64,000 bases of DNA from the NCBI GenBank assembly GCA_965202585.1, contig OZ241832.1, positions 35,898,001 through 35,962,000 of the forward strand, in the 5' to 3' direction. This document shows positions 11,473-45,425 of the stretch, one piece after another; within the stretch, counting starts at the first letter, position 1, and each line of letters begins with the position of its first letter. Under the pieces are notes generated by a model. It was not told where the DNA came from, did not search any database, and worked only from the letters and a program-made list of their open reading frames with translations. The DNA is from Thalia democratica. Its lineage: Eukaryota. Both the position numbers and the translations under genes were made by a program.

Positions 11473-14400
11473 ATGATAACTAAAGTATTTTTGCTTGTTT
11501 CTTGTTTAATTGGTCTTTCTTATGGACTTGAAGTGAAGGGTGATGAAGTTTACGTCGATTTTAGTAAATAAGTTTTAATTGTTCAAATATGTTAAATAGA
11601 TATAAATAACGAATATAAAGCTAATTGAAAGTAAAAGCTGAAAAAGTTATGAAAATTAGCTGTTTAAATATATAATCGGTATTTTTTTTTGTTGTCGTAA
11701 GTTTTTTATTAAGTTTTAAGTACTATCACATTGTAAACTTAAGTGCTAGTTTTATCTGAATATAATGAATATTGAAGTAATTGATTTTTTGTAGAAGAAC
11801 ACCCGGCCACAGCAAATGGAATAGTCAAAGAAGTGAAAAATTTAAAAATTGGCGATATTTCTGGTGATAAAAATGGATACAGCTATAAATTGACCAAGTG
11901 AATTGATTTAGATGTATCATTTATAATTAATACGTACTACAATAAAGTAGACATTAAATTAAGAAGGAAGGAAGTAAAAAACACTACCGTTTAACTATTA
12001 AATAAATAAACAAAAGTATATAGTTGTCATAACTAAGTAATACAAACGTAAAAATAAAAATAAAGTTATGAGCTGTATTGTTTTTATACAACATGTATAT
12101 GTGTCGTTTCAAATAATTTTGTATAAAAAAAAATATTTATTTAAACTTTTAATTCATTAAAAAAAATTTCCATATAACCAACTAAGAAACTATTAGTGGT
12201 TAAAGTGTGAAGTATATGAAGTTTTATTTTAGTTTGCTAAGAACTTAAGAAAAGTATTATAACTAAATTTTAACTTTACCTATTGTCCTGGACAAAACAT
12301 TAAACTGTATCCATAGTGTATGACGCAATAATCAAACGGTTTTTCGTACACCAGGTCCTTGGACTAAACTTATTGGTGCTTTATTTTTTGTCGTTCAATA
12401 AACAATATATACCAAAAAAAAAGAAAGTTTTATTTTTACAGTGTGAAGGTTAATTCATTTTTTGGGGACAAAATAAAAGTCAAACAAAATTCAGCAACTG
12501 ATTATCTTGCTCAGTTACAAAACGGTGAGGTTCATCTTTCTGGAAGTGTTAGAGTGTCAAAGAAAATTTCTGTTACAGTCGGGTAATACAATAAAAATTT
12601 TAAAGTTTAAATAAAAATTTCAAATATAAAATTTTAAACCTTCAAGTAAAATGAATTAAAAACTAAAATAAAAAAATCATAGTTTGGAGATAACAATTAA
12701 AATCTATGTTTTTTTTTTTATCTGTTAAGTTACTTAAAAAGTTGTCAAGAGTACTGTAATACATTGTGTGCTACATTTTATTTCAACCTAAGTTTTATCT
12801 TACTTTTGTAATTATAAACTAAGTAAAAGTTTATTTAAAAGTCATACTACTATAAAAACAAATGTAAAATGTTTCTTAAGCTATATTCACATTCATTTTT
12901 GGAAGTTCTAGTATTGTATTAATTAAGAGTATAAGTATTTTTTTCATAATATAAAAACTAAACTAAATTTTAAGATGCTGATAAAATCATTTTAATTTTC
13001 CTTAACTATTTGTAGTTATTTGTTAAGTATAAAACTTAAAAATTTTTATTCAACTTAGCTATTAACTTATTTTTTTATAGCTTACATTTTCAAACAGATC
13101 TTTAAAAGACTATTTGGTACAAGTAACCCTTAAAGAATAGTTTATTTTTTTTAAGTTGTTATGTACTAATTTTTAAAGTTTATTTGTAGGTAAGTTTTCT
13201 GTTTTAAAATTATTATACTCTTTTTTTAGAAGAACAAAATTTTAAATTTTTTATACAGTTTATAATATTTAAAATAATTCAAAAGTTTATGAAACGGAAA
13301 GCTTTTAAAAAGCATTTAATAAATGTACTGTTTCATTTATTAAAATTATTATTAAATTAAGTATATGTAGTTTTTTTTATCTATAATACTGTGTAAACAA
13401 ATCTTTGCAAATGTAACTGCATAATACTAAAAGGTATAAAAAATTTATTTTACAACTTATTGCATTAAGTTTGTTTTATTTATAAGATTCAGTAACTATT
13501 GATAAAAATATCAGATTTTGGAAATGGAAAAAGACTATATCCAAAACTATATCAGCCTCAGCAACTGCTAATGTGTATCTCAAGCGAGTTTATGTATCTC
13601 AAAATGTTAAAATTCAATTTGTTGGTGGTAAAATAAAGGTAGAGACGTTTTTTTAGACTTTTTTACCAAAACTTTTCGCATTTAGTTCTTAATTCAATAC
13701 AGATTTTATTATTTGAATAAATTCATTTGATGAAAAAACATTACATAACTTTAATATGAGTTAAAAAGACTTATAAAATAATTAAACAAACAACTTTTAA
13801 ATATAAAAGTCATCATATTGTCTTGTCAATGTTACACTAGTTGAAAAAAATGCTTAGTTTATGAACCTCTATGATTTATAACAAAATTTAAAGTATGTAT
13901 AAAACACATTTACACTTGAAACAAGCGCAAAAAAAAAGTAAGTTAAAAATGTATATGAATGATCTCTTTATTTTAGTGCGCTTAACCTACAAAAGACACA
14001 AAAAACGGCTAAGGATCTAAACCGTTAAGTAAAGACTTTTAATACTTTTTAAGACTGTTGAACTCAAAGGTAAAAAATGTAATTAAAACTATAACTAGTT
14101 CTATAAAGTTTTAACTTTATTTCAGACTCAGCCCGGTACCTGTTCAACTAAAATATATTCCCATAAGATAAATTTTGAAGCAAAAGACGCTTTCTCCAAA
14201 CTTATCGCTGGTATTACTAAGTTTCTTTCAAAATTGTTCAGCGGGAAAGTACGGGACTTCATGCAGAAAAAAGTGAGCTACTTTGAAATTAAATTAATTA
14301 AATCGTTAAGTTTTTTTAAGCTTCATTTTAAGATAAAATATACTTAAAGTAAGCTTTGTTTTTTAAGTGAAAATACAGAATGTTTTTTTTTAACTCTAAA

Positions 14401-14674
14401 CAAAATTACAAATTTGACTTATTACAACTATTTACTATAACACAGTATTCAACATTTAAAACAAGCGAAACTTGCTTTTTAATTTTACTGCTACACACTT
14501 TGATTTGTAAGTGTGTTGCCTATACAAACTAACAAGCAAGTTTTTAAAATTTTTATCATCACTGAAATAGTTCTGATTCTTTGTTATTATTCACAGCTGT
14601 GTTCTGCTATCGGAAAATCGTTAAGCAAGCTAGCAGTAGACATGGATATATTAAACGCGCTTGGTGGTCTATGA
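11473..14674 (+). CDS. Secreted single-domain BPI/LBP-like (TULIP) protein A1, 227 aa, cationic
   Basis: Exons 11473-11563, 11795-11897, 12442-12582, 13515-13638, 14126-14272, 14597-14674; all GT-AG, phases 1,2,2,0,0; total 684 nt, open. MITKVFLLVSCLIGLSYG|LEVKGDEVYVDFKEHPATANGIVKEVKNLKIGDISGDKNGYSYKLTNVKVNSFFGDKIKVKQNSATDYLAQLQNGEVHLSGSVRVSKKISVTVGFWKWKKTISKTISASATANVYLKRVYVSQNVKIQFVGGKIKTQPGTCSTKIYSHKINFEAKDAFSKLIAGITKFLSKLFSGKVRDFMQKKLCSAIGKSLSKLAVDMDILNALGGL. Signal peptide, L-K-I-x-D-I-S-G...Y-S-Y motif and the two Cys align with the BPI N-domain. Confidence 0.88.
12313..12405 (+). repeat. Dispersed hairpin repeat copy in intron 2 of A1
   Basis: agtgtatgacgc...tcgtacaccaggtccttggactaaac...aataaacaa. 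Confidence 0.7.
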
Positions 14675-15810
14675 TTCCGCTGGGAACAGTAGTCTCACAG
14701 GTAAAAACATTGTTTGGGTCATATACTCAAGCAAGTTTACTTTTTATTGTTTAAATGTCATCAGATTTGTGTAACAATGGTTTTAGTTTAGATGTTTGTC
14801 TTAACAAAAACATTTTTAAGAAATATTGTAGGTTATGTTGAAATGTAATTTATCTTAACATAATTCAAATTTTACTTATGAATAAAAATGTTTTATTTTT
14901 TAAATTTCCCTTTCATGTTCTTTTTGCTCAGTTTTACAAAGTGTTACTTTCTCGGTAATAAAATACTATTACTTTAGTATAACTTAAATTTTAGCTTTTG
15001 ATTGAGTTATTGCTAATTAGTTGTTTTAAATGCAGTAAAGTTTTTTAGATCGACCGTATCTGTTTTTGTTTAATACATCATATAAATGTGTGTTTGTTCA
15101 GTAACTTATATTTCTAGTTGTTGTATTTTTATCTATTCATCGTAATTAGTTTTACTTAATATTTCACTTAAGTTATCTCTGTCAAAACTACTCTATAAGT
15201 TTTAATTAAGTATAGAAGTAAGCAAATATTAAAATCAAAATTTTTAAATCACTTTTCATAAGTTTAAATACTGTACCTGTAATATATTATTCTCTAACGG
15301 ATGTTTTATTAAATACTTTCTAGTATATTTTGAACAATCTGATTGTTATTATGAGCTTAATACTATTTAGTTTATGGTTTTTCGTTTACTGATTAACTTT
15401 GAATAAATAATTTAATAATGTTAAAGCTTATTTATTAAACTAACATGTGTAGAAATAATGTTTAGAAATTCACAACTGAGTGAAACTCACTGATTTATTC
15501 TTTTTAAACTGGCAATCTGATAAATATAGTTCACGATTTTAACATACAACTTGATCTTTTTTCAAAGCCTTATTAGAGAAACAATGTTTAGTACAAAGCG
15601 GCTATAACTATTTGCAGAAAAAAGAAAACACATACAAATTTATAGTTGGTCAAAAAAGGGTAAAAACTCTAAAAAAAATGTTATAAGCTTAATGTAGGTT
15701 TTTTTATAAAACTCAGTTATTTAAGCTAACAAAGCTTTTTTTGCTTTACTGTCACAGGTTTAGCTGCTTTAGAAAAAAAAAATAACCAGAGTTATTATGT
15801 GAGTATAAAT

Positions 15811-18390: not shown

Positions 18391-21300
18391 ATGATAACTA
18401 AAATATTTTTGCTTGTTTCTTGTTTAATTGGTCTTTCTTATGGACTTGAAGTGAAGGGTGATAAAGTTTACATCGATTTTAGTAAATAAGTTTTAATTAA
18501 ACAAATATATTAAATAAATATAAATAACGAATATAAAGCTAATTGAAAGTAAAAGCTGAAACAGTTACCAAAAGTAGCTGTTTAAATATATAATCGGTAT
18601 TTTTTTTTGTTGTGGTAAGTTTTTTATTAAGTTTTAAGTACTATTACATTGTAAACTTAAGTGCTAGTTTTATCTGAATGTAATGAATATTGAAGTAATT
18701 GATTTTTTGCAGAAGAACACCCGGCCACAGCAAATGGAATAATCAAAGAAGTGAAAAATTTAAAAATTGGCGATATTTCTGGTGATAAAAATGGATACAG
18801 CTATAAATTGACCAAGTGAATTGAGTTAGATGTAACATTTATAATTAATACGTACTACAATAAAGTAGACATTAAATTAAGAAGGAAGGAAGTAAAAAAC
18901 ACTACCGTTTAACTATTAAATAAATAAACAAAAGTATATAGTTGTCATAACTAAGTAATACAAACGTAAAAATAAAAATAAAGTTATGAGCTGTATTGTT
19001 TTTATACAACATGTATATGTGTCGTTTCTAATAATGTTGTATAAAAAAAATTTGTTATGTAAACTTTTAATTATTTAGAAAAAAATTCCACTTAACCAAT
19101 AAGAAACTATTAGTGTTTTAAGTGTGAAGTATATGAAGTTATATTTTAGTTTGCTAAGAACTTGAGAAAAGTATTATAACTAAATTTTACCTTTACCTAT
19201 TGTCCTTAACAAAACATTAAACTGTATCCATGGTGTATGACGCAATAATCAAACGGTTTTTCGTACACCAGGTCCTTGGACTAAACTTATAAGCGCTTTA
19301 TTTTTTGTCGTTCAATTAACAATATATACCAAAAAAAAAGAAAGTTTTATTTTTACAGTGTGAAGGTTAATTCATTTTTTGGGGACAAAATAAAAGTCAA
19401 ACAAAATTCAGCAACTGATTATCTTGCTCAGTTACAAAACGGTGAGGTTCATCTTTCTGGAAGTGTTAGAGTGTCAAAGAAAATTTCTGTTACAGTCGGG
19501 TAATACAATAAGAATTTTAAAGTTTAAATAAAAATTTCAAATATAAAATTTTAAACCTTCAAGTAAAATGAATTAATAACTAAAATAAAAAATCATAGTT
19601 TGGAAATAATAATTAAAATCTATGTTTTTTTTTCTATCTGTTAAGTTACTTACAAAGTTGTCAATAGTACTGTTATACATTGTGTGCTACATTTTATTTC
19701 AACCTAAGTTTTCTCTCACTTTTGTAATTGTAAACTAAGTAAAAGTTTATTTAAAAGTCATACTACTATTAAAACAAATGTAAAATGTTTCTTAAGCTAT
19801 ATCCACATTCATTTTTGGAAGTTCTAGTATTGTATTAATTTAGAGTTTAAGTATTTTTTTAATAATATAAAAACTAAACTAAATTTTAAGATGCTGATAA
19901 AAGCGTTTTAATTTTCGTTAACTTTTTGTAGTTATTTGTTAATTTAAAACTTAAAATTTTTATTCAACTTAGCTATTAACTTATTTTCTATAGCTTACAT
20001 TTTCAAACAGATCTTTAAAAGACTATTTGGGAAAAGTAACCCTTAAAGAATAGTTTATTTTTATTAAGTTGTTATGTACTAGTTTTTAAATTTTATTTGT
20101 AGGTAAGTTTTCTGTTTTAAAATTATTATACTCTTTTTTTAGAAGAACAAAATTTTAAATTTTTTATACAGTTTATAATATTTAAAATAACTCAAAAGTT
20201 TATGAAACGAAAAGCTTTAAAAAGCATTCAATAAATAGGACTGTTTCATTTATTAAAATTATTATTAAATTAAGTATATGTAATTTTTGTTATCTATAAT
20301 ACTGTGTAAACAAATCTTTCCAAATGTAACTGCATAATACTCAAAGATATAAAAAATTTGTTTTACAACTTATTGCATTAAGTTTGTTTTATATATAAGA
20401 TTCAGTAACTATTGATAAAAATATTAGATTTTGGAAATGGAAAAAGACTATATCCAAAACCATATCAGCCTCAGCAACTGCTAATGTGTACCTCAAGCGA
20501 GTTTATGTATCTCAAAATGTTAAAATTCAATTTGTTGGTGGTAAAATAAAGGTAGAGACATTTTTTAGACTTTTTTACCAAAACTTTACGCATTTAGTTC
20601 GTAATTCAATACAGATTTTATTATTTGAATAAATTCATTTGATGGAAAAATATTACATAACCTTAATATGAGTTAAAAAGACTTATAAAATACTTAAACA
20701 AACAACTTTTAAATATAAAAGTCATCATATTGTTTTGTCAATGTTACACTAAAAAAAAAATGCTTAGTTTATGAACCTCTATGATTTATAAAAAAATTTA
20801 AAGTATGTATAAAACACATTTAAACTTGAGATAAGCGCAAAAAAAAAGTAAGTTAAAAATGTATATGAATAATGCCATTATTTATAGTGCGCTTTATTAA
20901 CCTACAAAAAAGACAAAAAACGGCTAAGGATCTGAACCATTAAGTAAAGACTTATAACACTTTTTAAGACTGTTGAACTCAAAGGTAAAAAATGTAATTA
21001 AAACTATAACTAGTTGTATAATATTTTAACTTTATTTCAGACTCAGCCCAGTACCTGTTCAACTAAAATATATTCCCATAAAATAAATTTTGAAGCAAAA
21101 GACGCTTTCTCTAAACTCATCGCTGGTATTACTAAGTTTCTTTCAAAGTTGTTTAGCGGGAAAGTACGGGACTTCATGCAGAAAAAAGTGAGCTCCTTTG
21201 AAATTAACTTAATTAAATCGTAAATTTTTTTTTAGCTTCATTTTAAAATAAAATATATTTAAAGTAAGTTTTGTTTTTTAAGTGAAAATACAGAATGTTT

Positions 21301-21588
21301 TTTTTAACTCTAAACAAAATTACAAATTTGACTTTTTACAACTATTTACTATAACACAGTATTCAACATTTAAAACAAGCGAAACTTGCTTTTTAATTTT
21401 ACTGCTACACACTTTGATTTGTAAGTGTGTTGCCTATACAAATTTTTAAGCAAGTTTTTAAAATTTTTATCATCATTGAAATAGTTCTGACTATTTATTA
21501 TTATTCACAGCTGTGTTCTGCTATCGGAAAATCGTTAAGCAAGCTAGCAGTAGACATGGATATATTAAACGCGCTTGGTGGTCTATGA
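18391..21588 (+). CDS. Secreted single-domain BPI/LBP-like protein A2, 227 aa, cationic
   Basis: Exons 18391-18481, 18713-18815, 19359-19499, 20428-20551, 21041-21187, 21511-21588; GT-AG, open. By hand 12 of 684 nt differ from A1 (5 replacements: V5I, E25K, V28I, V>I in exon 2, G>S in exon 5; 7 silent). Confidence 0.88.
19231..19322 (+). repeat. Dispersed hairpin repeat copy in intron 2 of A2
   Basis: tggtgtatga...tcgtacacca stem followed by ggtccttggact. Confidence 0.7.
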
Positions 21589-22425
21589 TTCCGCTGGGAA
21601 CAGTAGTCTCACAGGTAAAAACATTGTTTTGGGTCATATACTCAAGCATGTTTACTTTTTACTGTTTAAATGTCATCAGATTTGTGTAACAATGGTTTTT
21701 AGTTTAGATATTTGACTTGACAAAAACATTTTTAAGAAATATTGTAGGTTATGTTGAAATGTAATTTATCTTAACATAATTCAATTTTTCACTTATGAAT
21801 AAAAATGATTTTTTTTTAATTTCCTTTTCATGTTCTTTTTGCTCAGTATTACAAAGTGTTACTTTCTCGGTAATAAAATACTATTACTTTAGTATAACTT
21901 AAATTTTAGCTTTTGATTGAGTTATTGCTAATTAGTTGTTTTAAATGCAGTAAAGTTTTATAGATCGACCGTATCTGTTTTTGTTTAATACATTATATAA
22001 GTGTGTGTGTTCAGTAATTTATATTTCTAATTGTTGTATTTTTATCTATTCATCGTAATTAGTTTTACTTAATATTTCACTTAAGTTATATCTGTCAAAA
22101 CTACTCTATAAGTTTTAATTAAGTATAGAAGTAAGCAATTATTAAAGTCAAAATTTTTAAATCACTTTTAGAACCCATTATAGATTTCTTTTTATTTAGC
22201 TTTAAAATACAAAAAAAAAACATAAAATATATAATCGAAATTAATAAAAATATTATTTTATTAGCTTTATTGAAGACAAAGTATCTTGTTTTTAATAAAA
22301 ACGGAAGTTTGAATACTTTACTTATAATAAAATCTGAATAACTGTTACAAAGAATAATATAAAAATAATAAGTCAACTGTCGGTTTTTAATTTTACACAA
22401 TTTTAGCAAGAAGCTACTATACTAA

Positions 22426-23741
22426 TAAGGGTGGGCAATGTACGGCCCGCGAGTGAAAATGACCGGCTTGCAAAGGTCAATATTACAAAATTTTTTTGAA
22501 ACTTTGAACCATAATTTTATAAAAAAAAAACTGTAAGAATTTGACTTTAGAAAACATATTTAAAAATTGAATTTAGATTATTTATAGTGATAAAAACACC
22601 ATTTTGTCGTAGCATTTTGTTTTGTTCAAAACAAGTGGTAGTATCTCTATTTATACTGAATTAAATATCGTCAATAAATATGAAATAAAATATAATTAGT
22701 ATAATAATCCAGCACAAAGATGCCAAAGATAGATGATTTCGAAAACTTAATAAAAAGTTATAAGTTTTAGCTTAAAATATTACACTCAAGTAATTTTTAG
22801 TAATCGAATTTTTGTATTTATAAAATTAGTATTAGTATGTTCAAGGGTAATAACAAACATAGATTTCTAAATACTTAATAAAAATTAATTTAAAATAACA
22901 TATTTGATAGTTATTTCTGAAAAAATTGATTTGAAATAGTGTTCTACTAGATCTATAAATTAGAGAACGGGTCAAAATTGCACGAAGACAAAACTGCATG
23001 AGGTTACTAAATTACACGAGGGGACTAAATTGCACGAGAAAAGATTGCACGAAGCCAAATTTGCACGAGGGCACAAAATTGCACGAAGACAATTTTGCAC
23101 CAAGGGTCAATTTTGCTAGAGTTACATTTTTGCACGAGAGTAAAAGTAGATCATAAAAAAAAAACTAAAATATAAATTTAAAAATAAAATAAATAAATAA
23201 AGCTACTGACCGAGGGTAAGGGTTAGGGGTAACAGTGATAGTAAAAATAAAATAAAATAAAATAACTAATGAAATGATTATTAAAAAATAAAGGTTAAAA
23301 GAAAAAAATTAATAAAAAAAAGCTACCGACAGAGGGTAAGGGTTAGGGGTAACAGTGATAGTAAAAAGAAAAAAACTAAACTAAAATAAAGCTAATTATA
23401 AAAAAACAACTCCTGCAAAAATGTCTCCGTGCAGAATTGTCTGCTCGTGCAAAAGTGTCTTTGTGCAGAAGTGACCCTAAGTGCAAAAGTGTCTTTGTGC
23501 AATTTTATCCCCTCGTGCAAAAGTATATGCGTGCAATTTTGTACACATGTGCAAGTTTGACAGCTGCCCATAAAATTTTTATCCTACCGGATCCAAACTT
23601 TTTTTTCTAGAGTTCTGACCGGATCTTGTTTAAAAACTAGTACCCGGTTGGATCCGTATAATATTTTCAAGTCAGGATCCGGGTCTAAAAAAACATTATC
23701 CGGTCATAATTCCTTCCGATCAAAAATGTTGCCCACCCCTA
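22426..23741. mobile_element. hAT-type MITE inside a ~1.7 kb insertion specific to unit 2
   Basis: TIRs taagggtgggcaa (22426) / ttgcccaccccta (23741). tactatac occurs at 22415-22422 and 23742-23749 (probable 8 bp TSD, offset by 3 nt on the left). Unit 1 is empty at this site (~15256). Confidence 0.7.
22963..23569. mobile_element. MITE with inverted arrays of ~18 bp TTGCAC units and a duplicated gggtaagggttaggggtaacagtgatag core, nested in the hAT MITE
   Basis: Left arm has about nine aaattgcacga-type units, right arm the inverse gtgcaaaa/gtgcaatt units. Termini gagaacgggtcaaaattgcac / gtgcaagtttgacagctgcc. The core is repeated at ~23205 and ~23325. Confidence 0.8.
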
Positions 23742-24435
23742 TACTATACAAAGCATAAAAAAAAAATTGTTTACAAACTTTTCTTGGATCAAAGTAACGA
23801 GTTTTACAACCCTGGTCTTTGGACCTTATAAACATACTGTCTGAGCTGGTTCATTCAGACTTGGATAGTATCAAGGCATAAAATTCATAAGTTTAAATAC
23901 TGATCGTTTAATATATTATTCTCAAACGGATGTTTTATTAAATACTTTCTAGTATATTTTGAACAATCTGTTTGTTATTATGAGCTTAATACTATTTAGT
24001 TTATGGTTTTTCGTTTACTAATTAACTTTGAATAAATAGTTTAATAATGTTTAAGCTTATTTATTAAACTAACATGTGTAGAAATAATGTTTAGAAATTC
24101 ACAACTGAGTGAAACTCACTGAGTTATTCTTTTTAAACTGGCAATCTGATAAATATAGTTCACGATTTTAACATACAACTTGATTTTTTTCAAAGTCTTA
24201 TTCGAGAAACAATGTTTAGTACAAAGCGGCTATAATTATTTGCAGAAAAAAAAACACATACAAATTTATAGTTGGTCAAAAAAGGGTAAAAACTCTAAAA
24301 AAATGGTATAAGCTTAATGTAGGTTTTTTTATAAAACTCAGTTATTTAAGCTAACAAAGCTTTTTTTGCTTTACTGTCACAGGTTTAGCTGCTTTAGAAA
24401 AAAAAAATAACCAGAGTAATTATGTGAGTATAAAT

Positions 24436-25518: not shown

Positions 25519-26817
25519 TAGTGATGTACCGGACCCGGATCCGGACTTTTTTTTCAAATTAGAATCCGGCCGGAACCGGATCCGGACTATTTTTTCAAAT
25601 TAGAATCCGGCCGGATCCGGATATCAGACAAAAATGGCAATATCCGGCCGTACCCGGACCGGGATAGTGAGTCCGGTACATCACTAGTATAAACTAGCCT
25701 GAGTCAGAATGAGGTTTTTAAAAACTTTAAAAAAAACTTTAATCTAATAATAAGTAGAACAGCTAGTCACAGGTTGACAATTTGGTAGTAAAGTTGATGG
25801 TACACTTAACTTATTAGTACTACCCATCATTATTAAATCCTAACTTATTTAATTAATATCTAACAAATACTAAATTCTAACTGAGACTACTTTATATAAT
25901 CAGACACGACAGTTTTGAGTGATAAATCTTTTATATAAAACACAACAAGAAATACTAGCATAAACAAAGTAATTAATTACTTTGGTAACACTTTAAAAAC
26001 TGAAAGCTATTTAAATCGATATCAAAAGACTTAACACAATAAACTAAAAATTAAATAAAACTTTCAGTAGAAAAGAAACTGTAAATTTTTTAAAAACTAT
26101 TAATCTATAAACCTGGCTTAAATATTTAAACAACTAAACACCAGTTGAAATAATCACTTTTAAAACAAAACACTACTTACAATAAGCATTCACAAAAAAG
26201 TTCAAGATATTTTGTTGCTTCAAGCTGCACACCAAGCTAACTAACTGCTTACATATAAACTGCCTGTCATGTTCTGATGTTTTGTTGCTTCAGCATTTAG
26301 TTTGAACATTTCGTCATATGATTCTCATTGGCTCGTATATTCAACCATATTAACTCTAAATATTCTCTGAGCTCAACTTTAAACAATAAATAATGCAAGT
26401 AATCATTCAAAAGTTTTCAATTTTACAACATATGTAAAGAGTTGCATTTCTGAAATGTTTATTTCATAATTTAAATGTAAACAAATGTAAATTAGTCACG
26501 TGTACAAAATGAGCCAATCACGGTAGGTGTTTAATTTTAACTGACGAAAATGACTCTTATTAATTTACTCAGGGTTTGTTTTTGAAAAAATACTTTTCAG
26601 TATGCTCTTTTTTACTAACTAGATCCGGGTCCGGATTTTATTTCAAATTAGAATCCGGCCGGAACCGGATCCGGACTTTTTTTTCAAATTAGAATCCGGC
26701 CGGAACCGGATCCGGACTTTTTTTTTCAAATTAGAATCCGGCCGGATCCGGATATCAGACAAAAATGGCAATATCCGGCCGGACCCGGACCCGGATAGTG
26801 AGTCCGGTACATCACTA
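25519..26817. mobile_element. Young hAT-type non-autonomous element, 1299 bp, with an extra internal right end
   Basis: Perfect TIR TAGTGATGTACCGGA / TCCGGTACATCACTA; perfect 8 bp TSD cacaaaat (25511-25518, 26818-26825); empty site in unit 1 at ~16894; ~36 bp ccggatccggac..tttcaaattagaatccggccgg tandem units. Confidence 0.93.
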
Positions 26818-28659: not shown

Positions 28660-31600
28660 TCATATACCAAGTGCGTTTAATATATCCATATCTACTGCTA
28701 ACTTGCTTAACGAATCTCCAATAGCAGAACATATCTGTGAATAATTAGTAAGTTATAAGAGTTTCTAAGGTGGTAAAAAAGTTTTAGTTTAATTAAGTTG
28801 TAAATATAAACTTAACCCAAAGCTACTAATTTCTAATAAAAATAGCACTATAATTATACGCTAACTTAAACTACAAAAAAAAATCTTTTTTAGAAATTTA
28901 TGGATAAGTGGCGCTGTTACTAGAAATTGTACATAGTATGTTCGTCAAATTACACTTTTTATAGTTATAATCAGTTTAACTAACAATATTTGTAAATAAT
29001 TAATTTTATTGGTTTACTTAGAGTCATTAAAAGTGCAAAGGTTTTGTTTTGTCATTCAAATAAAAAAATAAGATTTTTAACACCTATTTAAAAAAAGCTA
29101 AATATATTTTTGGTTGAGTATTAACTAACTTTGCTTTTCTTATATTAAAAATATCTACTTTCCTTATATTAAAAAACTAACTTCGCCTTGCATGTAATCC
29201 CGTATTCTTTTACTAAACAACTTTGAAGCAATGTTGGAAATACCAGCGATAATCTTAGAAAACAAGCCTGATGCTTTGAAATTTACTTTATGGTAATTTA
29301 TGTTAGTTGAACAGGTTCCCGGTAGAGTCTGAATTTTCTTTAGTTTAGTTACAGCTAAAGTACTATGTATTTTCTTTTTAATATTACTTTATCTACCATT
29401 TGAAAAATGTTTAGCAGTCTTATGAAAGTATTCTAAAACTTTTATTTAAAAGCTCGGTGAACTATATTTTTAGTCATTATTTGCATTAGTTTTTACTGTT
29501 AAAGAAAAATTTTGGTTTTTCTTAAATAATTCTTAATTAACTTTTTTTTCAAACAAATCACGTGTTTATTAATACACAATAAAGTTATTAAAACGATAAT
29601 TTTTTTATTAAGGTTTAGAATAATTTAAATTAAGTTAGTTATAATACTGGTTAAGGTTAAAAAGCTGTTGGACTTATGTTTTAAAAGATATTTAATATTT
29701 TGTTAATAGCGTAATTATTTTTTTCTAAATTGAGTTTTTTATGTAAAATTAAATACTAAGATATATAATTAAAAATGTTTCAAAAAGAAACGATTACAAA
29801 AATATTATGTAAAACCTGATAAAAGAAAACTTGTTTATACCTTTATTTTATTACCAATAAATTGAAGTTTGAGATTTTGAGACACATAAACTTGCTTGAG
29901 ATACATATTAGCAGTTGCTGACGCCGATATAGTTCTGGATATAGTCCTTTTCCATTTCCAAAATCTAATATTTTAAACCAAATTCATTGTATGCATTACA
30001 TGCACCTATAAGTAAAACTAACTTTTAATGGTAGAAGTTGTAAAAGTATTTTTGTTTCACTTTTTTTTCAGAACTATATATATAGACTTACAATTCTTTG
30101 TTTACACTAACAATAGATAAAAAACAAAAGTAAAGTGTAACTAAAAAGATTATGTTGTAAATCAAAATAATTCTACTTATCGAAATTTTTAAAAGCTTGG
30201 CTTTTTAATCTTTTTTCAATGATAAACTAACGAAAAACTTAACGAGCTTGTTTTTTATCCTAAATAAGTTTTTATCTATTCTAAAATTAAAAAACCTGAA
30301 AATAAATTACCAAACTTTATACTTAACATATCAAATAAAACAGCATTGTATTTGATAGGTTTATTGTATAAAAAAAAGGTATTGATCAATAAAAAAGTTA
30401 AAACATTTAGGCTAAACAAACTTTAAGTAAAAAACCTAACAAGTCTAAAATTTATATAAGTTTAAAATAAATGTAAAGATTTACCAAAAAACCGATACCA
30501 AAGTTTTTTACAATTCATTTAATTAAACTTAGTTTTTTTCAAAATGTTTATACTCAAAAATAATAGAACATAAAAGTTACCAAAAATCATTGTGGATATA
30601 CTTTAAGGTTTAACTTCTAATGTCTTTCTAAGTAAAATTTACAGAAATATGAGAAAATTTAGATTTGAATAAATGCTACACAAAAATATATTGCAATGCT
30701 TTTTGAAACATTTTTAGAAAATTTTTTTTTTTTGAAATATACCTTAGTTTTATCTCCTAAATACAACTTTTATGATTAGGTTTTACACTATATCGTTCAA
30801 GTATTTTAAGTACTAATTTCATTTAAATTTAAATTGTATTACCCGACTGTAACTGAAATTTTCTTTGACACTCTAACACTTCCAGAAAGGTAAACCTCAC
30901 CGTTTTGTAACTGAGCGAGATAATCAATTGCTGAATTCTGTTTAACTTTTATTTTGTCTGCATCAAATGAATTCACTTTTATACTGTAAAATTAAAGTTC
31001 TTTAGAAATATTTCTAAATTTTAGATAGAGCAATTCTGTTTATTTTATAGTATACTGAAGATAGCCGTTTATATTTTGATATGTATACGTTTTTTTCGCA
31101 TTTATTTTAATTAGTTTATTTTACGCACAAACCATTTAAGTTATTAGATTTGTAATTTACTCCATTGTTAGAAAGTTTAGTTCATAAAAATTAAACTTAA
31201 TAAAGCAAGAAAACATCAACAAAAGTGATCAGTGTCGAAATTAAACGTTCATGCGCCGTTGTACAAGCTCAAAATGTTAATAGCAATTTTTTTTCATACT
31301 ACTTAAAACGTTGCGCAGCAGTTAAACAAGGCTGAAGTTACTGATCATAACGCCATACCAGCAAATTGTCTGATGATTTAAGTTTTATGATCCAAACTTT
31401 TTGTTACAAGATTTTAATATATACTTATAATAGATACAAATAAATAATTTACTTGGTCAAGGAAAAGCTTATTCCATTTTTACTATCAGAAATAGGGCTA
31501 ATTTTTAAGGCTTTTACTTCTTTGATTATTTCATTTGCTGTGTCTGGATGCTCTTCTACAAAAACAAAAAAATATTATAGTTTAAATAATTTAAAGAACA

Positions 31601-31864
31601 AGTTATATAAGTAGAGTCTAATAACAATTTAAGTTTAGTAAACAACTAACTTAAATTATTTTAAAACACCAAAGTTTTTGTATAACAACAAAAGTTAGCC
31701 AGTTACTTATGATAGTTGTTATAACCTTTTAGGTTTACTTGATAGTATTATCATTTAATCAAAACTTATTTACTAAAATCGACGTAAACTTCATCACCCT
31801 TCACTTCAAGTCCATAAGAAAGACCAATGAAACAAGTTGCAAGCAAAAGTATTTTAGTTACCAT
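28660..31864 (-). CDS. Secreted single-domain BPI/LBP-like protein A3, 226 aa
   Basis: Minus-strand exons 31864-31774, 31555-31453, 30983-30843, 29964-29841, 29328-29182, 28734-28660; GT-AG, open. MVTKILLLATCFIGLSYGLEVKGDEVYVDFKEHPDTANEIIKEVKALKISPISDSKNGISFSLTNIKVNSFDADKIKVKQNSAIDYLAQLQNGEVYLSGSVRVSKKISVTVGFWKWKRTISRTISASATANMYLKQVYVSQNLKLQFIGNKIKTLPGTCSTNINYHKVNFKASGLFSKIIAGISNIASKLFSKRIRDYMQGEICSAIGDSLSKLAVDMDILNALGI. Confidence 0.88.
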
Positions 31865-34699: not shown

Positions 34700-35729
34700 A
34701 TGTTAACTAAAATATTTTTGCTTGTTTCTTGTTTAATCGGTTTTACTTGTGGACTTGAAGTAAAGGGTGATGTAGTTTACGTCGGTTTTAGTAAATAAGT
34801 TTTAAAAAAGTTATTATATTTTTAAGTAAATATAAAAAGTTATAACAACTATCAAAAGTGTTTGGCAAATTTTTGTAGTTAAACTAAAACATTGATATTT
34901 AAAATAATAGAAGTTATCTGTTCGCTAAACTTAAATTGTTACTAGATTCTACAATTCAACGAACAACTTTAACTAATCAAAAAAAATAATTAACTTTTTG
35001 TTTTTGTAGAAGAACATCCAGACACAGCAAATGAAATAATCAAAGAAGTAAAAGGTTTAAAGATCATCAACGATTCTTTTTATAAACATCATAAAGGAAT
35101 GAGCTTTTCATTGACCAAGTAAATAATTTTTTTGTATCTATTGTAAGTACTTACTTAAATAACAGAAAGTTTTGATCATAACACTTAAATCATCAGACAA
35201 TTTGCTGGTATGGTGGTATGATCAGTAACTTCAGCCTTGTTTAACTGCTGCGCAACGTTTTAAGTAGTATGAAAAAAACTTGCCATTAACATTTTGAGCT
35301 TGTATCACGGCACATGAAAGTTTAATTTCGACTCTGATATTTTTCGCTGATGTTTTATTTTTTAAACAAAATTAATAAAAACTAAACTTAATAAAGAAAG
35401 AAAAAAATTCTAACAATGGAGTAAATAATAAAACTAATAGCTTAAATAATTTGTACGTCAAAAACTAATAAAAATAAGTGCAAAAAAAAAAGTATACATA
35501 TCAAAATATAAATGGTCATCTTTAGTATACAATAAAATAAACAGAATATATTAAAAGTTTAGATTTTTTTTTAAATCAATTTTTACAGTGTGAAGGTGAA
35601 TTCATTTAATGCGGACAAAATAAAAGTTAAACAGAATTCAGCAGCTGATTATCTCGCTCAGTTACAAAACGGTGAGGTTCATCTTTCTGGAAGTGTTAGA
35701 TTGTCAAAGAAAATTTCACTTACAGTCGG
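34700..35729 (+). pseudogene. 3'-truncated BPI-like copy A4 (exons 1-3 only, frames intact)
   Basis: Exons 34700-34790, 35010-35118 (+6 nt, IINDSFYKHHKGMSFS) and 35589-35729. Homology to A3 intron 3 stops near 35830; no exon 4-6 homologue found before gene B. Confidence 0.8.
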
Positions 35730-36934: not shown

Positions 36935-39900
36935 TCACATAAGTTGTGCCATCACCTCGTTCAAGTTTATGCTGTCCAGAGCTTTTTGTATTATTGGCCT
37001 TACTGTTGGACAAATCTGTTTAAAATATTAGAGACATATAAAAAAGTATGATTGCAGAATACGAAACCAAAATAGCTACTTATTGTAAATAGGGCAAAAA
37101 TGTGAAGATAACTTTACATAGTTTAGTTGCGTGCTTTTAGTTACTAGACAAAAGCAAAACAGTGATGATTGTCTTTTAATGAAAAAAAAACAGAAGTAAA
37201 ATTTTATACTATAACTCTTTACTTAAGTTTTTGTAAACTGGCTTAAAATAGATAATCACATAATTAAGTTTGTGAAACAGTAAAAAACAGACATACAAAA
37301 AATACTTTCTTTTTTTATTAGAAGCTTGTGAAACTATCTTTTAAACCTTAACTTTGTAGATATCCACGAATTTTACGTTTCAATTTACTTAAAAGCAGTT
37401 TTAAAATGAATAAAAGACAGAAATAAAATTCCAAATACTAAACAAGACGTTTTAAATCTTAAAATCTTAAACAACTGCTGCATTAACTATCACGGCTGCA
37501 TTCAAACGAAAGAGCGAAAAACGTTTCGACAAATTTCTCAAATACGAACTGCTCCAACAAACCTTTTCGCTTGCCAACTTCTTAATCACTCCTTTAAAGC
37601 TCGCCTTGACATATTGCCCAATGACAGCGATGAGGTTGCCCCAGAAGTTTTTACCTTGTATTTCGTAGTTTATGTTGCCCACCCTGCTCACACATGCTCC
37701 TACTTCAGCCTTTGAAAAATTAAACAGTTTGTTTAACGTTTGTTAACGAACATGCTTTTTTTACGTTTGTAACGATTTCAGTTTCTAAGGTGCTTAAAAC
37801 GCTGTTTTTATAAGAAGTTTTGATGTCAAATTCTGTAAATTTAAACTTCATCATAATTATTTATTATGACAGTTGTATACATTTTCTAATTTAAATTTAC
37901 TGACAACAACTATTAAGATTGTCAATAAAACTATTAGCATTTATAATATTTATAAAACATTTTAGCATCAAGCTTAAGTAATGACTACACTTAATTGAGC
38001 TTTAATGATGTTTTTATTCGCTAGTCGCTGTAAGTATTAAATAATATTACTTTCAATAGATGTTTTTAGTAAAAATTTATTTTCTTTTTAACGTAGACCA
38101 AAGAACTCCTGAAAAAACAAAGCATTTTTAATTCCTTGTTATTTATATTTCAATTAAAAGTAAACAGCTTTTTACTTTTATTAGGCAGAGAATAGTTGTT
38201 TAAAATAAAGATTCATGAACTAAAAACATTATTTTGACTCTTGTTTAAGGGCTTATAATATTCTAAACAGTGTTAACTTAATTAAATTTTCACTTTTAAT
38301 ATGTCCTACGTTTTGGTTTATTGATTTTTTAGTCAATAAAAGAAGTTTTAAAATTGTTTTGTGTTGTTAAAAGTCATCAAATAAAAACTTTAGCGTCTGT
38401 TTAGAACTTATACTTGTGATTATAAATAAAGTCTAACCATGGGTTTTCTGTATGCTTCACGATTTATATTCATATTTAAAGTTGGTTTTAATTAATAGTA
38501 GTTAAGTATATGAAGCGAACGTACCAACAAAATTATTTTTTTAATCAATCTTATTAGTAAAACGATCTTAATGTATGATAACATTTGCTTGTTTTGAACT
38601 AAACAGCTAAATATTTTTATAATCGTTTTTTAAGCGAAAAAATTAGAAAAATGACTTAAGTAAGCGCTTCAAGGTACTATAACTATGAAAAAATTAGTAA
38701 ACTACCTGTATATGTTTTTGATTTTAGCTGTATATTGAACCTAAAAAAACTATAACTGCAAAATATGTTTATAGTTTTAAGAACTAACTTTGGCTTTATG
38801 ACAAAACTGTAATTAGAATTTATTTTATCAAACTTAAGTAACATATAAATATTTTTAAGTTTATTTAAACTTATATTTGCTATTTTATAAACTTTTTAAA
38901 ATAGTTTGTTTTACAACTTATTAGCTGAAATAACTTTTGTATTCATACCTAAACAAAAATGGCTTATAGATCCTTTTCTTTTGATATTAATTTGTAATTT
39001 ATACTGAAGTTTAACAAAACCATACAAAGTGACACGCTAAGATGTTCAACTCAAATTACCAATGTTTCTAGTAAATTTTAAGTAATTTTTGATCTATGAC
39101 AAATAAATAACTTTTAAACTGTTTATATTATAAGATAATGCGCTTCAAGAGTCTTACACTTTCTTTTAAAGCAGTTTTAGTTATTATGAAGTAACGATTT
39201 CTACGTACTTTTTAATATATTAAATAATGTAAGGTATCCTTCTTACGCTACGAAAAAACTAACCACTAGCTGGCCGTCTACTTCGTTGATTTTGATAGCT
39301 TGGGAAAATTCCAAATCAGAAAGGCTAGCTTTAACATGAACGCTTGCATCCACTGTTTTTGTAAAAAACCAAATCCTACGAAAAAAGTTAAAAAAATGTG
39401 ATTCTTATTTTTTTTTAATTTTTTAGTTTTGATTCCAAATTCAGTAATATATTTCAGGAAAGTTTAAAAATATACATTATCATTAGTAAAAAATTCTGCT
39501 AACTTTCAAATGGTAGATAGACAGTTTTACTAAATTAATTACAAGTAAGTTTGAAGCGTGCTAAGTTTAATTACAATTTAACAGAGTATTATTGTTTGAA
39601 AAGGTCAGCTTGTTCCATTTGGGTAACTTAACAACACGGTAGCAAGTTTGCTAATTTTGTTCTACTGAAGTTAATTTAAAAAAAAAATCAATAGTAGTAG
39701 ATAAATAATTAGATGAGTTTTACAAACTTACTTAATTTCTTTCACTGCCGTAACATCAGCTTCAATGCTCGCAGACAAGCCGTCGAGATCAACCCTGAAA
39801 ATATTGCCTCCGCTAGCAACCAGCTTCGCCGATCCGACATTGAAGCCCGTCACTTTGATGCTGAAAAGTTACGTCATAAAAGCTTTACTACCATCTTCAT

Positions 39901-40836
39901 TTAACCAAACAGTTTTAACTTCAAATAGGTTACAGTGATTTTAAAAAACTATAAGCTAGATTTTGTTCTAGTATTGGAGTCCATATGTTTTAGAATTCTT
40001 TTACAGAAATATTTTAAAAGTATAGGGCCTATTCTATGTTAAATGCCCAATGATTTATTATAATTAAAGGCCTCTCGATTTTAAAAGTATTCTAGATTAA
40101 AAGTTTAGGAAGGTTTAGTAATTACTAGTAATTTAAATTTAATATAACCTGAATAGAAGACTTAAAAATTGGTGTTGTTTGTGCAAAATCAGTAACAAGC
40201 TCTGAATTTTTGTCATAAAAGTAATACTTAAAATTACTTTCGTTTCTAAAACTACTAAAAACATAATGCAATTGTTTAGAAGTGAAACCTTCACCTCGGT
40301 CTTATTTGAGCTTTTGCTATCGAAAACTGTAACCAATAAGTTAACAGTGTAAATAAAGAAGTAAATAAACAAAATCAGTTTAACCTGAATAGAGGGTGAA
40401 AGAATAAGTTCACTTATATTCTTAAAAACCTTTAAAATAATACGTACATCTTCTAGCCTGTATTCCAGCATAAAAATAACAACCAAATATAATTTTTGTC
40501 CTCACTTTTTAATGTACACTTTTATGCCACTAAATTCTTCTGAGATATCATCGAGATTGATATTTTTTACCACTTGTTCCAACTCTTCAGCAGAATTGCT
40601 TCCCACTAAAAAACAAACAAGAACTTCCTTCAAACTGACATTAACTTTCTATCTAGTTTTAAGTTATATTATACATTGTACATTAGATATTCAAAACAAA
40701 AATTTATAGTTGAGGTACTTTTTTTATTGCACGTTTATAAGTTTACAATCAGCTTACAAAGTTCAAACGAGTTTTCCGTAGGCTGTGAGTTTGCGCATAT
40801 AAGGAAAAAAGTCAAAACAACAATTGACAGCTTCAT
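36935..40836 (-). CDS. Divergent secreted single-domain BPI/LBP-like protein B, 215 aa, slightly acidic
   Basis: Minus-strand exons 40836-40758, 40605-40506, 39860-39732, 39375-39264, 37709-37563, 37015-36935; GT-AG, phases 1,2,2,0,0; exons 3-5 are 129/112/147 nt, exactly as in A5. MKLSIVVLTFFLICANSQPTENSFELLGSNSAEELEQVVKNINLDDISEEFSGIKVYIKNIKVTGFNVGSAKLVASGGNIFRVDLDGLSASIEADVTAVKEIKIWFFTKTVDASVHVKASLSDLEFSQAIKINEVDGQLVAEVGACVSRVGNINYEIQGKNFWGNLIAVIGQYVKASFKGVIKKLASEKICPTVRPIIQKALDSINLNEVMAQLM. Confidence 0.85.
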
Positions 40837-41836: not shown

Positions 41837-42349
41837 AACAGTTTAACGTCATGTCCAGGACTACTTATTATTATGTGAATGAAGAAATTAAATAATTTTT
41901 CTACTAAAAAACACAAAAGAATGTTATAAAACTTTTATAAACTTATTCTTGGTAACTTTAACATTAATAAATTTGTCTAAAATAGACAAGGTTAAACTTT
42001 TCAATTTCAAAAAGTATTAAAACGAGGTATACAACATTTTGCACAGTACTTACTTTATTTAACTAACGTAAGATTATCTGCATTAAACTAATAACACAAC
42101 TCCACGGAGTTATGAAACTATAAGTACTACAAAGAGTAAAAGATAAAGAAAATGTAGATGTGTATTTTCTATGCTATCATAAGTAAATATAAAAAACAAT
42201 TAACTAATAACTATGACAATATATACAAGTTTAGTTTGCAGATTACTAATTTACATACTTTTAATATTAATACTACATTAATAGAAACAGTTTGATATAT
42301 TCTATTTGTACTTTTTAAGTAAAACATGTTAAAAGAATTTATGTAAGGA

Positions 42350-42681
42350 ATGTAGTTGCCGAAACTAAAATACCACATGTTTTACAAACACACAACATTA
42401 TTTTCTGAATAAGAATTAGTGACACGATTTTTATTAATATATGTTACTGAGGTTTTTAAATCGTCTTAAAGTGTGTAAATACTTAATCATGGTCTATTAT
42501 TTCATGCCCTTAAGTCTTTTGGAGCAAGTAAAGCTGTGTGGTTTTCAGTTTCGGCGACTACTTTCTTTGCATGAAACATGAATTTATACTTGTGTTTATT
42601 AAACATATTTTTTTAGTTAGATTTTAGTATAAAAGACAAACAGTTTATAAAACTTACACAAGTATTCCTACATCTAGAAGT
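42350..42681 (+). promoter_or_regulatory. A5 upstream region with paired inverted GAAACT(A/G)AAA motifs and candidate TATA box
   Basis: gaaactaaaa at 42361; ttttcagtttc (= GAAACTGAAAA on -) at 42542; TATAAAAG at 42628. Same motif pair upstream of A3 (31989, 32173) and A4 (34384, 34570). Confidence 0.45.
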
Positions 42682-45425
42682 ATGATAACTAAAGTATTTT
42701 TGCTTGTTTCTTTTTTAATTGGTCTTTCTTATGGACTTGAAGTGAAGGGAGATGAAGTTTACGTCGATTTTAGTAAATAAGTTTTTATTAAATAACTATA
42801 ATTTTGAGTTAAAGCAAAATTTATAACAATTATCAAGTTTAACTTGTTAAACTATTTTTGTAAAATTATAGCTTAGTATTTTAAGCTTTTGAAACTATAG
42901 AAATAATTTGTTTGTTAAAAGTAAAGTGTAATGTTTCCTTAAAATAAAATAAAATCTGACTTTAAAGATATTTGCACTGATGTTTATTTAAAATATTTTT
43001 GTAGAAGAACATCCAGAAACAGCAAACGAAATAATCAAAGAAGTAAAAGGTTTAAAAATCAGTAATACTTATGGGAAAGAAAAGGGAATAAGCTATTCAT
43101 TGACCAAGTAAATGAATTAGTTTGTATCTATAATAAGTATTTGCTAAAAAATCAATATTGAAGGTAAACAAATACAATAAAAATGGAAATGTATATAAAA
43201 ACTTATAGATAACTTATTTGTATTTCAAAGTATAAGGAATTAAACTCAAGAAAAACAAGCTCGAAAAAATTAAATTAAAAGTCGAGCTAATATATAATTT
43301 TTGAAACTTTTTTATTTTTACTAAGATCTGTGTCGTTTTTAATTATTATTATGATAAATTTTCAAAAAATTAATTTACTATGAGCTTAGCTTCTAAAAAC
43401 TTGTTTCACAAACTAACCTACTAAGAAACTGTTACTATTAAAATTTTCAAAAATTTGTAATTTTAGTTTGTGTATTGTACGAATTAAAAAGAGCTACTAT
43501 ATTTAAGTTTAGAAATGTTTTTTAAAAACTTTATTTTTACAGTGTGAAAGTGAATTCATTTAATGCAGACAAAATAAGAGTCAAACAGAATTCAGCAACT
43601 GATTATCTCGCTCAGTTACAAAACGGTGAGGTTCACCTTTCTGGAAGTGTTAGATTGTCAAAGAAAATTAAGTTTGTTTAATCAATCGGTACTAAAATAT
43701 ACTTTACTTTTGTTTAGGATAATATAATAATGTTAATTTAAGTATACTAATAAATGGTATCAACAATTTTTATACACTATAAAATACTAATCAGATTATA
43801 TAATAACGAGTTTAATCTTAAAGGTATTTCATTCATACCTGTTAATTTTTTGAATTTTTTTTCAGCTTTTAAGTATCTTTAACAACCTTTCCAAACTAAA
43901 GATTACTAAGTTTTTAAAACTGTTACTTATGCAGAACTTCTGTAAGTCATACTACTAACAACAACTTTTATCCAAATCGAAGTCAACTTTAGTAACTTGA
44001 ATATTGCATTGTTTAATAAAACAAACATGTTTTAATTAAAATAACAACCAAACTGTAAATAAAAGTTTGTAAATATAACTGCAAAACTTTTAAAACATAA
44101 AACATAAGCAAACTTTTATATAAATTTAAAATTTAAACGTCTTTTTTTACGTATGAGGTACAGTAATACTACAAATAATTATTTTAGTAAAATATTAAAG
44201 GTTTTTATTCTGGTCAAAAACTATATCGGCCTCAGCAACTGCTAATGTGTATCTCAAGCGAGTTTATGTGTCTCAAAATCTCAAACTTCAATTTCTCGGT
44301 GGTAAAATAAAGGTAGAGAAACAAATTTAGTTCTTTTTATTTTAAGATTATTGTTTAACCCTTGATTCTTTACTAAAATAAGATTTTGTACTTTACCAGA
44401 AACTTATTCGTGAAACAAAGGTTTAGATAATTTATAAAACATAAGTATAATATAATTGTGAAATTATAATTTAGGCGTATATATAGTTATAAATATATGA
44501 TATATCTATATAAAACTACATCAAAAAGCATGTTCTTAATTTTAAGTTTGATTTGTCGGTTTATACGATTTTTTTTTTATTAAAAAAAAAAATTAAATAG
44601 GAAACATTTAATCAATTCATTTGAAGTAAGATTGGTAAATAAAGAAAAAACTTCTCATTAGTCTAATTACTACAAATACTTAGATTTGAAGTTTTTCGTT
44701 TTGAGACTGTTAATGTTTTAACGATAAATAAAAATATTTTTCAAAAAGAAAGTTTAGCTAAAACTTTTACTAAAAAAATTTCAGACTCAACCGGGAACCT
44801 GTACAACTAGAATATATTACCATAAAGTAAATTTCAAAGCATCAGGATTTTTTTCTAAGATTATCGCTGCTATTGCCAACATTGCTTCAAAGTTGTTTAG
44901 TAAGAAAATACGGGATTTCATGCAAAGCAAAGTTAGTTTTTTAAGTTATCCCTTTGACAAGTATGTTTACAATTTTTGTCTTAAATAAGTTATTCAAAGT
45001 TTGTTTAAAAAAACCTTTCCATTTTAATCTGCTCTAGATAAAATCACAAACTTAACTTAGTAAAGTTATTGAAAAAGTTGAAGTAATTTCAATATTGATT
45101 ACAAAGTCTAATTTGACTACATACTTGACTAAGATTCTGTTTAGTTTATTTTCCAAGAGCTCTACTCTAGAACTAGTAAAATAAATCCTTAACTTTTCCT
45201 AAGTTAATTTTGCTTATATTTATTACAACATTCTATTACAACTAATGGTTTCAAAAACTTTTTTTAATTTACGATTAACTGAAAAACTAAGTTATTTCAC
45301 ATTTTTTCCTTATTAGAAACTCTTTTAATTTTTTATATCATTCACAGATGTGTTCTGCTATCGGAAAATCGTTAAGCAAGTTAGCAGTAGATATGGATAT
45401 ATTAAACGCGCTTGGTGGTATATGA
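42682..45425 (+). CDS. Secreted single-domain BPI/LBP-like protein A5, 219 aa, cationic, short-hairpin form
   Basis: Exons 42682-42772, 43005-43107, 43543-43671, 44201-44312, 44785-44931, 45348-45425; GT-AG (exon 4 acceptor AAG), open. Tip reads SGSVRLSKKIK|FLFWSKTISAS; exon 5 TQPGTCTTRIYYHKVNFKASGFFSKIIAAIANIASKLFSKKIRDFMQSK. Confidence 0.85.

Follow-up and report, generated by a model that had tools for sequence, protein, structure and literature searches.

A cluster of single-domain BPI-like genes in which an intron-split tip hairpin occurs in a short and a putatively once-lengthened form

How could the two strands of one protein hairpin, encoded by different exons, come to differ between neighbouring paralogues by exactly the same length? 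This question is raised by a 64,000-nucleotide stretch of DNA from Thalia democratica (GenBank assembly GCA_965202585.1, contig OZ241832.1, positions 35,898,001 to 35,962,000), hereafter the window, to which coordinates refer unless another sequence is named. It is AT-rich eukaryotic DNA (about 25% G+C) from a genome of 802 Mb, and self-comparison and tblastn of the window revealed a family of six-exon genes. In some of them exons 3 and 4 are each 12 nucleotides (nt) longer than in the others, on either side of intron 3. We consider it probable, as the best overall explanation, that these genes form a cluster encoding cationic proteins resembling BPI, in which the tip hairpin was lengthened once and has since been inherited as a module.

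In this account, the window would hold a gene cluster specific to this lineage. Its products would be secreted proteins, each made of a single LBP/BPI/CETP N-terminal (TULIP) domain, and intron 3 would divide, at the apex, the hairpin that matches the polycationic tip of BPI and LBP (residues 86-102). In the sublineage formed by genes A1, A2, A3 and the fragment A4, exon 3 would have gained 12 nt (K becoming SVTVG) and exon 4 another 12 nt (KTIS becoming KTIS-KTIS), the tetrad FW(K/R)W being kept at the turn of a two-stranded ribbon four residue pairs longer. The long module may have arisen once from a short gene of the FW(R/K)W type, before the split from a marine relative with about 90% identity, and would then have persisted beside short forms while flanking exons were swapped among paralogues. 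Finally, the A-type proteins would bind anionic lipids such as lipopolysaccharide (LPS), with an action putatively comparable to that of BPI's bactericidal N-terminal fragment, and the reach of the aromatic-cationic tip into the target layer may be tuned by the length of the hairpin.

The gene models, built from the sequence, have six coding exons and open frames; their introns are all of the canonical GT-AG type and agree in phase. A1, of the long form, lies on the plus strand at 11473-14674 and encodes 227 amino acids; its exons are 11473-11563, 11795-11897, 12442-12582 (141 nt), 13515-13638 (124 nt), 14126-14272 and 14597-14674, the introns are GT-AG throughout, the frame is open and the exon borders agree with those of a complementary DNA (cDNA), L012. 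With A1, the long gene A2 (18391-21588, plus; exon 3 19359-19499, 141 nt; exon 4 20428-20551, 124 nt) forms a recent tandem pair of 6.9 kb with a synonymous divergence (dS) of 0.05. A3, also long, is on the minus strand at 28660-31864 (226 amino acids; exon 3 30843-30983, 141 nt; exon 4 29841-29964, 124 nt). A4 (34700-35729, plus) is a partial inverted copy of A3 reduced to exons 1-3 (34700-34790; 35010-35118, 109 nt; 35589-35729, 141 nt); exons 4-6 are missing, and the similarity to A3 stops about 96 nt into intron 3. The short form is represented by A5 (42682-45425, plus; 219 amino acids; exon 3 43543-43671, 129 nt; exon 4 44201-44312, 112 nt), with the tip SKKIK/FLFWSKTIS (the slash marks intron 3) and the exon 3 donor AA/GTTTGT, and by the distant paralogue B (36935-40836, minus; 215 amino acids; exon 3 39732-39860, 129 nt; exon 4 39264-39375, 112 nt), an acidic protein with an isoelectric point (pI) of 5.2 and the tip VKEIK/IWFFTKTV. 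The models thus reproduce the exon 3/exon 4 lengths on which a preliminary description of this locus was built: 141/124 nt for A1, A2 and A3, 129/112 nt for A5 and B, and an exon 3 of 141 nt for A4. The tip peptides that it quoted are all found where it placed them, with the correction that A3 reads FWKWKRTISRTIS instead.

Do these lengths reflect real splice junctions? In the models, each junction is the sole in-frame option, and reading through the A5 donor meets a TAA three codons on (43679-43681). Moreover, intron-less marine metatranscriptome cDNA contigs of the Joint Genome Institute (JGI) encode full-length relatives with 88-92% DNA identity to the exons of the window. They carry the junctions at the predicted exon borders, the long one in L012 (protein P0013) and the short one in L013, L014, L016 and L017 (proteins P0001, P0012, P0014 and P0015). 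In two marine metatranscriptome runs, coverage of the A5 region is confined to exons and the joints of exons 1/2, 4/5 and 5/6 were seen, and the long-form junction, GG/ATTTTGGAAATGG (GG/ATTTTGG), was seen as a loose contig end in marine RNA. As a separate observation, each of L012, L013 and L014 (JGI sample 3300018893) opens by duplicating its own 5′ end in inverted orientation over 228 nt (bases 1-456), probably through an artefact of assembly.

We then consider how each of the two gains came about. In exon 4 of A1, positions 13531-13554 form a tandem repeat of 12 nt, AAGACTATATCC / AAAACTATATCA, encoding KTIS-KTIS. The two units match at 10 of 12 positions in A1, in A3 and in the cDNA of the relative, and a repeat this good arose in 25 of 20000 shuffles of the exon end (p about 0.001). 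The exon 4 gain is a tandem duplication, as the preliminary description had proposed, and it is the only one of the two gains that is demonstrable in this way. In A3 (29925-29948, minus), both KTIS units carry the same A>G change relative to A1 (AGG.../AGA... against AAG/AAA), giving RTIS-RTIS, which reflects a K>R change that arose twice in parallel or a small conversion of one repeat unit by the other.

The exon 3 gain has a different aspect. The end of exon 3 in A1 (12569-12582) reads TCTGTTACAGTCGG, encodes SVTVG and takes the place of AA (K) in short forms, so that 12 nt are gained in net terms. We tried it as a duplicate of nearby exon sequence, and the best internal match, 8 of 12, is at chance level. 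The alignment of long with short genes runs up to exon 3 position 127 and resumes at the KTIS codons of exon 4, with nothing alignable in between. Since no homology of the tip and intron 3 could be detected across the two length classes, an insertion in exon 3 is indistinguishable from a shift of the splice donor or from a replacement. Of the "two separate indels" initially envisaged, the one in exon 4 therefore stands, and the one in exon 3 is not separable from these alternatives. We rate below even, but take seriously, the possibility that the donor of exon 3 shifted, or that the tip was replaced as a whole together with intron 3, which would have turned former intron, or foreign sequence, into coding DNA. 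Such an event would explain why the region between the two alignable borders is unmatched even though the other introns of A3 still match those of A5 and of A6, an unlinked short-form gene described below. It would also suit the difference in intron 3 length, 878-932 nt in long genes against 529-533 nt in short genes, and the lack of a significant source for the 12 nt inside the exon. On the other side, when we aligned the 5′ end of the A5/A6 intron with TCTGTTACAGTCGG, in search of an exonised intron, the match was not convincing. The long-form intron 3 was likewise tried as a transposon, but it has no dispersed copies, belongs to no repeat family and is not a dispersed repeat. Moreover, the long module may descend from a short gene of the FWRW type that is absent from the sequenced genome.

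Which of the two lengths is the older one, and do mixed forms exist? A word-index protein search returned 12 family members, and several relatives are found elsewhere in the genome. A6 is an intact short-form A-type gene, unlinked, on another chromosome (L009, G000:C10:25527500-25537000), with exon lengths of 91/103/129/112/147/78 nt, the tip ILWWKK and the donor AA/GTATGT; together with B2 it makes up a second head-to-head A/B pair. B2 was considered as a length intermediate because of its odd tip and was rejected as a pseudogene, with a TGA stop in codon 4 (exon 1), an exon 3 of 132 nt, a cut exon 2 and an exon 5 that was not found. B3, on a third chromosome, has the short-form length. A divergent, seemingly intact A-like gene, which we call C, lies on another chromosome than the window, on the minus strand of L011 (G000:C10:23522000-23531999); its exon 3 is 129 nt and its exon 4 is 100 nt, and its tip, TKEIG/SKTYSAS, lacks the aromatic tetrad. 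For exon 4 of gene C, an acceptor that looks stronger lies 23 nt upstream, but its use would disrupt the reading frame. Genome-wide, the A-type copies of exon 3 number six (4 long and 2 short) and those of exon 4 number five (3 long and 2 short). The intermediates looked for, 141/112 or 129/124 nt, were found neither genome-wide nor among the cDNAs of relatives. A scan of metagenome contigs for the KTIS-KTIS pattern, in search of more long or hybrid cDNAs, was abandoned, as all of the at least 120 matches listed were due to chance.

The short length is common to A5, A6, B, B3, P0005, P0017, P0018 and the distant acidic homologues P0006 and P0010, three B-like cDNAs being among its carriers. 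Because this length is so broadly shared and the hairpin of BPI is shorter still, by two residues in the profile alignment, the comparison of aligned lengths shows the short form to be ancestral and the long form derived. The same polarity had first been proposed from B alone. The converse, a long ancestral form from which A5 and B lost 12 + 12 nt, would account for the symmetry of the difference and for nothing else. It would require many identical parallel double deletions, given A6, B, B3, the three B-like cDNAs, the two distant homologues and nearly BPI, and the KTIS repeat has the signature of a fresh duplication; we regard it as extremely improbable.

The short forms also bear on the origin of the tip motif itself. 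Their tips already carry FWRW, VWRW, ILWWKK and ILFWKK, so that the FWKWKK tip, initially described as new, is inherited, and only its projection, as predicted in the models below, would be new. Moreover, exon 4 of the short FWRW cDNA starts with ATTTTGGAGATGG, one base off the ATTTTGGAAATGG of the long form. With an inherited tip and a near-identical start of exon 4, the long form looks like a short FW(R/K)W gene to which K>SVTVG and the KTIS duplication were added. The identity of the insert and intron 3 indicate that the long form arose once; indeed, the insert is identical in A1, A2 and P0013.

The history of the remaining gene parts is not that of the tip. The dS values (A3-A5 0.127, A1-A5 0.313 and A1-A3 0.352, with 0.08-0.11 between the long and short cDNAs of the relative) contradict a simple tree of long versus short genes. 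A3 is instructive in this respect: from exon 3 through intron 3 to exon 4 it is colinear with A1 (66% over 1237 columns), and from position 127 of exon 3 to the codons for KTIS it has no similarity to A5, but its introns 2, 4 and 5 resemble those of A5 and A6 and not those of A1. This pattern means that the tip and intron 3 form a module with its own genealogy. As read from these alignments, the flanks are shown to have been exchanged or homogenised among paralogues, probably by gene conversion, while the module persisted. The contigs of the relative may be chimeras, but the mosaic of A3 is genomic. Separately, exons 2 and 5 of A1 and A2 (11795-11897 and 14126-14272; 18713-18815 and 21041-21187) have 72-78% identity to the other A-type copies, and their exons 1, 3, 4 and 6 have 86-98%; the former values point to strong local divergence or to a foreign donor.

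A neutral explanation has to be weighed here, namely that loop length drifts at a tolerant tip and makes no difference to what long and short proteins do. No part of the family varies more than the tip: among six short genes no two have the same tetrad, although the strands on either side are invariant, and gene C (129/100 nt) does without the tetrad altogether. The apex of the long form is, by comparison, frozen. The 24 inserted nt are conserved across A1/A2, A3, A4 and the relative at dS values of 0.3-0.46, and the nine differences found inside the insert among these lineages are mostly synonymous (six, with three conservative changes, K>R twice and V>L once). Both forms have, in addition, been retained in two taxa despite homogenised flanks. 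Neutral drift is for these reasons an unlikely explanation in our view.

What kind of protein carries this hairpin? Taken one by one, the exons of the window gave no Pfam match because of their small length, and we used database relatives as proxies for the window proteins in searches and fold work: P0012, 89% identical to A5, and P0013, 80% identical to A1. The family PF01273 (LBP/BPI/CETP N-terminal) is matched above its gathering cut-off of 28.8 by P0001 (A5-like, 42.8 bits), by the B-like protein (33.4) and by the distant homologues (36-38). Scores across relatives range from 33 to 43 bits, and no other Pfam family was matched; PF06585 (Takeout/JHBP) and PF16984 (group 7 allergen) gave no match even at an expectation value (E) of 10. 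A single protein searched with phmmer against PDB returned only noise; a profile of ten family members retrieved BPI (1EWF, E 2.8e-6; 1BP1, 1.1e-5), followed by CETP and LBP. The AlphaFold2 models (mean predicted local distance difference test score, pLDDT, of 78) adopt a BPI-type barrel of long twisted antiparallel strands round a long C-terminal helix. Their best Foldseek matches in PDB are 1EWF (9.7e-9), 1BP1, CETP and LBP, then takeout, JHBP, Der f 7 and SPLUNC1, and BPI-domain proteins lead the matches in AlphaFold DB. The genes end after exon 6 (215-227 amino acids), cDNAs of about 1.1 kb hold the whole open reading frame, and the C-terminal barrel PF02886 with its central sheet is absent. 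The A and B proteins are single-domain "half-BPI" proteins of about 200 residues, consisting of the LBP/BPI/CETP N-terminal (TULIP) domain. Two cysteines are invariant in all members; the profile alignment places the first on C135 of BPI and the second 4 positions off C175, the two residues that form the conserved disulfide in BPI. A hydrophobic N-terminal leader would serve as signal peptide, suggesting that the proteins are secreted. The A-type proteins are strongly cationic (pI 9.6-9.9, net charge +11 to +21), and the B-type proteins and distant homologues are acidic (pI 4.7-5.5).

The position of the hairpin could be determined with the same profile alignment, which pairs SKKIK/tetrad/K-TIS with BPI G89-KWKAQK-(two-residue gap)-RFLKMSG102. 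Intron 3 maps to K95/R96-F97 of BPI, within the tip at 86-102, in line with the alignment to the LPS-binding tip proposed at the outset. In BPI, residues 86-102 are the polycationic N-terminal tip region most implicated in LPS binding (PMC4620459). K, R and W abound in the A-type tips, and the B-type tips are hydrophobic on an acidic protein.

In the short model (P0012), strands 85-109 and 112-140 are joined by a turn at L110-F111. In the long model (P0013, residues 7-232), the strands are 85-113 and 116-148, and the turn is at W114-K115. Long and short forms are thus predicted to have one and the same hairpin with 4 residues more per strand, 8 in total, and the tip pLDDT is 72-82 in both models. 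This agrees with the preliminary description, which had both strands lengthened equally and had expected a longer hairpin. On the same prediction the tip would also project further, as that description had it, although the tip motif itself is older. In both, the turn falls on positions 2-3 of the tetrad (ILFW or FWKW). A hairpin would form whichever side received eight residues near the apex, as the turn would move; the 4+4 split matters only in keeping the aromatic tetrad at the turn, where it stays because the gains are equal on both strands. A one-sided intermediate, of the mixed length found neither in the genome nor among the cDNAs, would displace the tetrad from the apex by two residues, into one of the strands, which is structurally conceivable. 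Pairing residues across the predicted turn gives one face with F, W, V, K, V, I, I and K and another with G, K, T, T, S, S, K and T; the added ribbon is likely amphipathic, with a hydrophobic-plus-lysine face opposed to a polar one. From standard strand geometry, and not read off the models, the extra reach would be about 13 Angstrom.

The closest known systems are the N-terminal domain of human BPI (1BP1, 1EWF; rBPI21/23) and LBP (4M4D), which share Pfam domain and fold with the A and B proteins. BPI is likewise cationic (pI about 10, against about 9.8 here), the invariant cysteine pair described here lies at or near the positions of its C135 and C175, and the Lys/Trp-rich hairpin described here sits at the position of the polycationic tip of BPI and LBP (PMC4620459). 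BPI and LBP are, however, two-domain proteins, whereas those described here have neither C-terminal barrel nor central sheet; compared with the tip hairpin of BPI, the profile alignment adds 2 residues in the short form and 10 in the long form. Cationic beta-hairpins that bind LPS (the hairpin of anti-LPS factor, tachyplesin, arenicin) share the Trp/Lys-rich amphipathic ribbon, but they are disulfide-clamped and are free peptides or belong to another fold, whereas here the hairpin is a cysteine-free outgrowth of a TULIP barrel; the likeness is a working analogy only (PMC10672452).

Other TULIP proteins suggest a different function, in which the family would act as general lipid carriers or surfactants, as do SPLUNC1, latherin, takeout and group 7 allergens, and the hairpin would make no contact with LPS. 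The A and B proteins have a single domain, as these do, and takeout, JHBP, Der f 7, SPLUNC1 and latherin are among their Foldseek and Atlas neighbours. SPLUNC1 (BPIFA1) and latherin are also secreted single-domain proteins of BPI fold from tandem, fast-evolving clusters, and the family falls next to an Atlas "latherin-like" cluster. Takeout/JHBP and the mite group 7 allergens have a single TULIP barrel of similar size and are neighbours at the level of fold and of language model. The acidity of the B-type proteins and distant homologues fits this alternative too. In contrast, the fold match to SPLUNC1 and latherin is far weaker (E about 3e-4, against 1e-8 for BPI), and sequence profiles choose PF01273 and BPI over PF06585 and PF16984, so that the proteins described here are not members of the Takeout/JHBP or group 7 allergen families. 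Two A-type features likewise argue against a general carrier, the net charge (+11 to +21) and the Trp/Lys tip found where BPI and LBP have their polycationic one; PLUNCs are not known to be strongly cationic proteins with a hairpin tip. Altogether, we find the carrier or surfactant alternative rather doubtful for this family.

Several points nevertheless weigh against a once-lengthened, BPI-like tip module. After removal of the hairpin columns, the long genes are not grouped in the tree, the approximately unbiased (AU) test being borderline (p 0.062), so that on these columns their monophyly is neither established nor rejected. The RNA contigs come from metatranscriptomes of relatives and paralogues, and among the joints listed from marine RNA contigs A5's own joint, 43671 to 44201, does not appear. 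Exons 1, 2 and 6 are 100% identical between the long and short cDNAs of the relative (L012, L013, L014), for which an assembly chimera is one possible reason, besides recent conversion and alternative exon cassettes. The structural models are of proxies, the hairpin sequence of P0013 being that of A1, and rest on a 10-row alignment that already carried the 4+4 gaps. Finally, the binding of LPS or other anionic lipids, like the functional divergence of long and short forms, is something that we infer, and TULIP proteins of one domain (SPLUNC1, latherin and takeout, for example) often serve as lipid carriers or surfactants instead of killing bacteria.

Two further features of the window lie outside the genes considered here. 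Downstream of exon 6, the spacing of the A1/A2 repeat shifts from about 6915 to about 8625 nt, and about 1.7 kb at 22169-23884 are present in the A2 repeat unit and absent from that of A1. An inverted repeat pair of 187 nt with 90% identity (25794-25980 and 60740-60926, 35 kb apart) is probably a dispersed repeat.

As to the meaning of two lengths, a bolder reading, to which we give little credence at present, is that the long and short hairpins are two functional modules kept side by side by selection. Gene conversion would then even out the remaining parts of the paralogues inside each species, whereas the tip and intron 3 would resist it and last across species. Length would serve as a ruler for how deep the apex gets through the surface layers of different bacteria, smooth or rough LPS being an example, with short forms varying the tetrad and the long apex frozen. 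In BPI and LBP, no part is more implicated in the initial contact with LPS than the N-terminal tip hairpin. More generally, the proposed history provides a structural element that is split by an intron at its apex, was altered on both exon edges and would be inherited as a unit within gene-converted, mosaic paralogues. The matched natural proteins would differ mainly in the length of the tip hairpin (+4/+4), on a one-domain scaffold and with the apex motif kept, and the role of tip reach would thus become directly testable on a natural pair of long and short forms.

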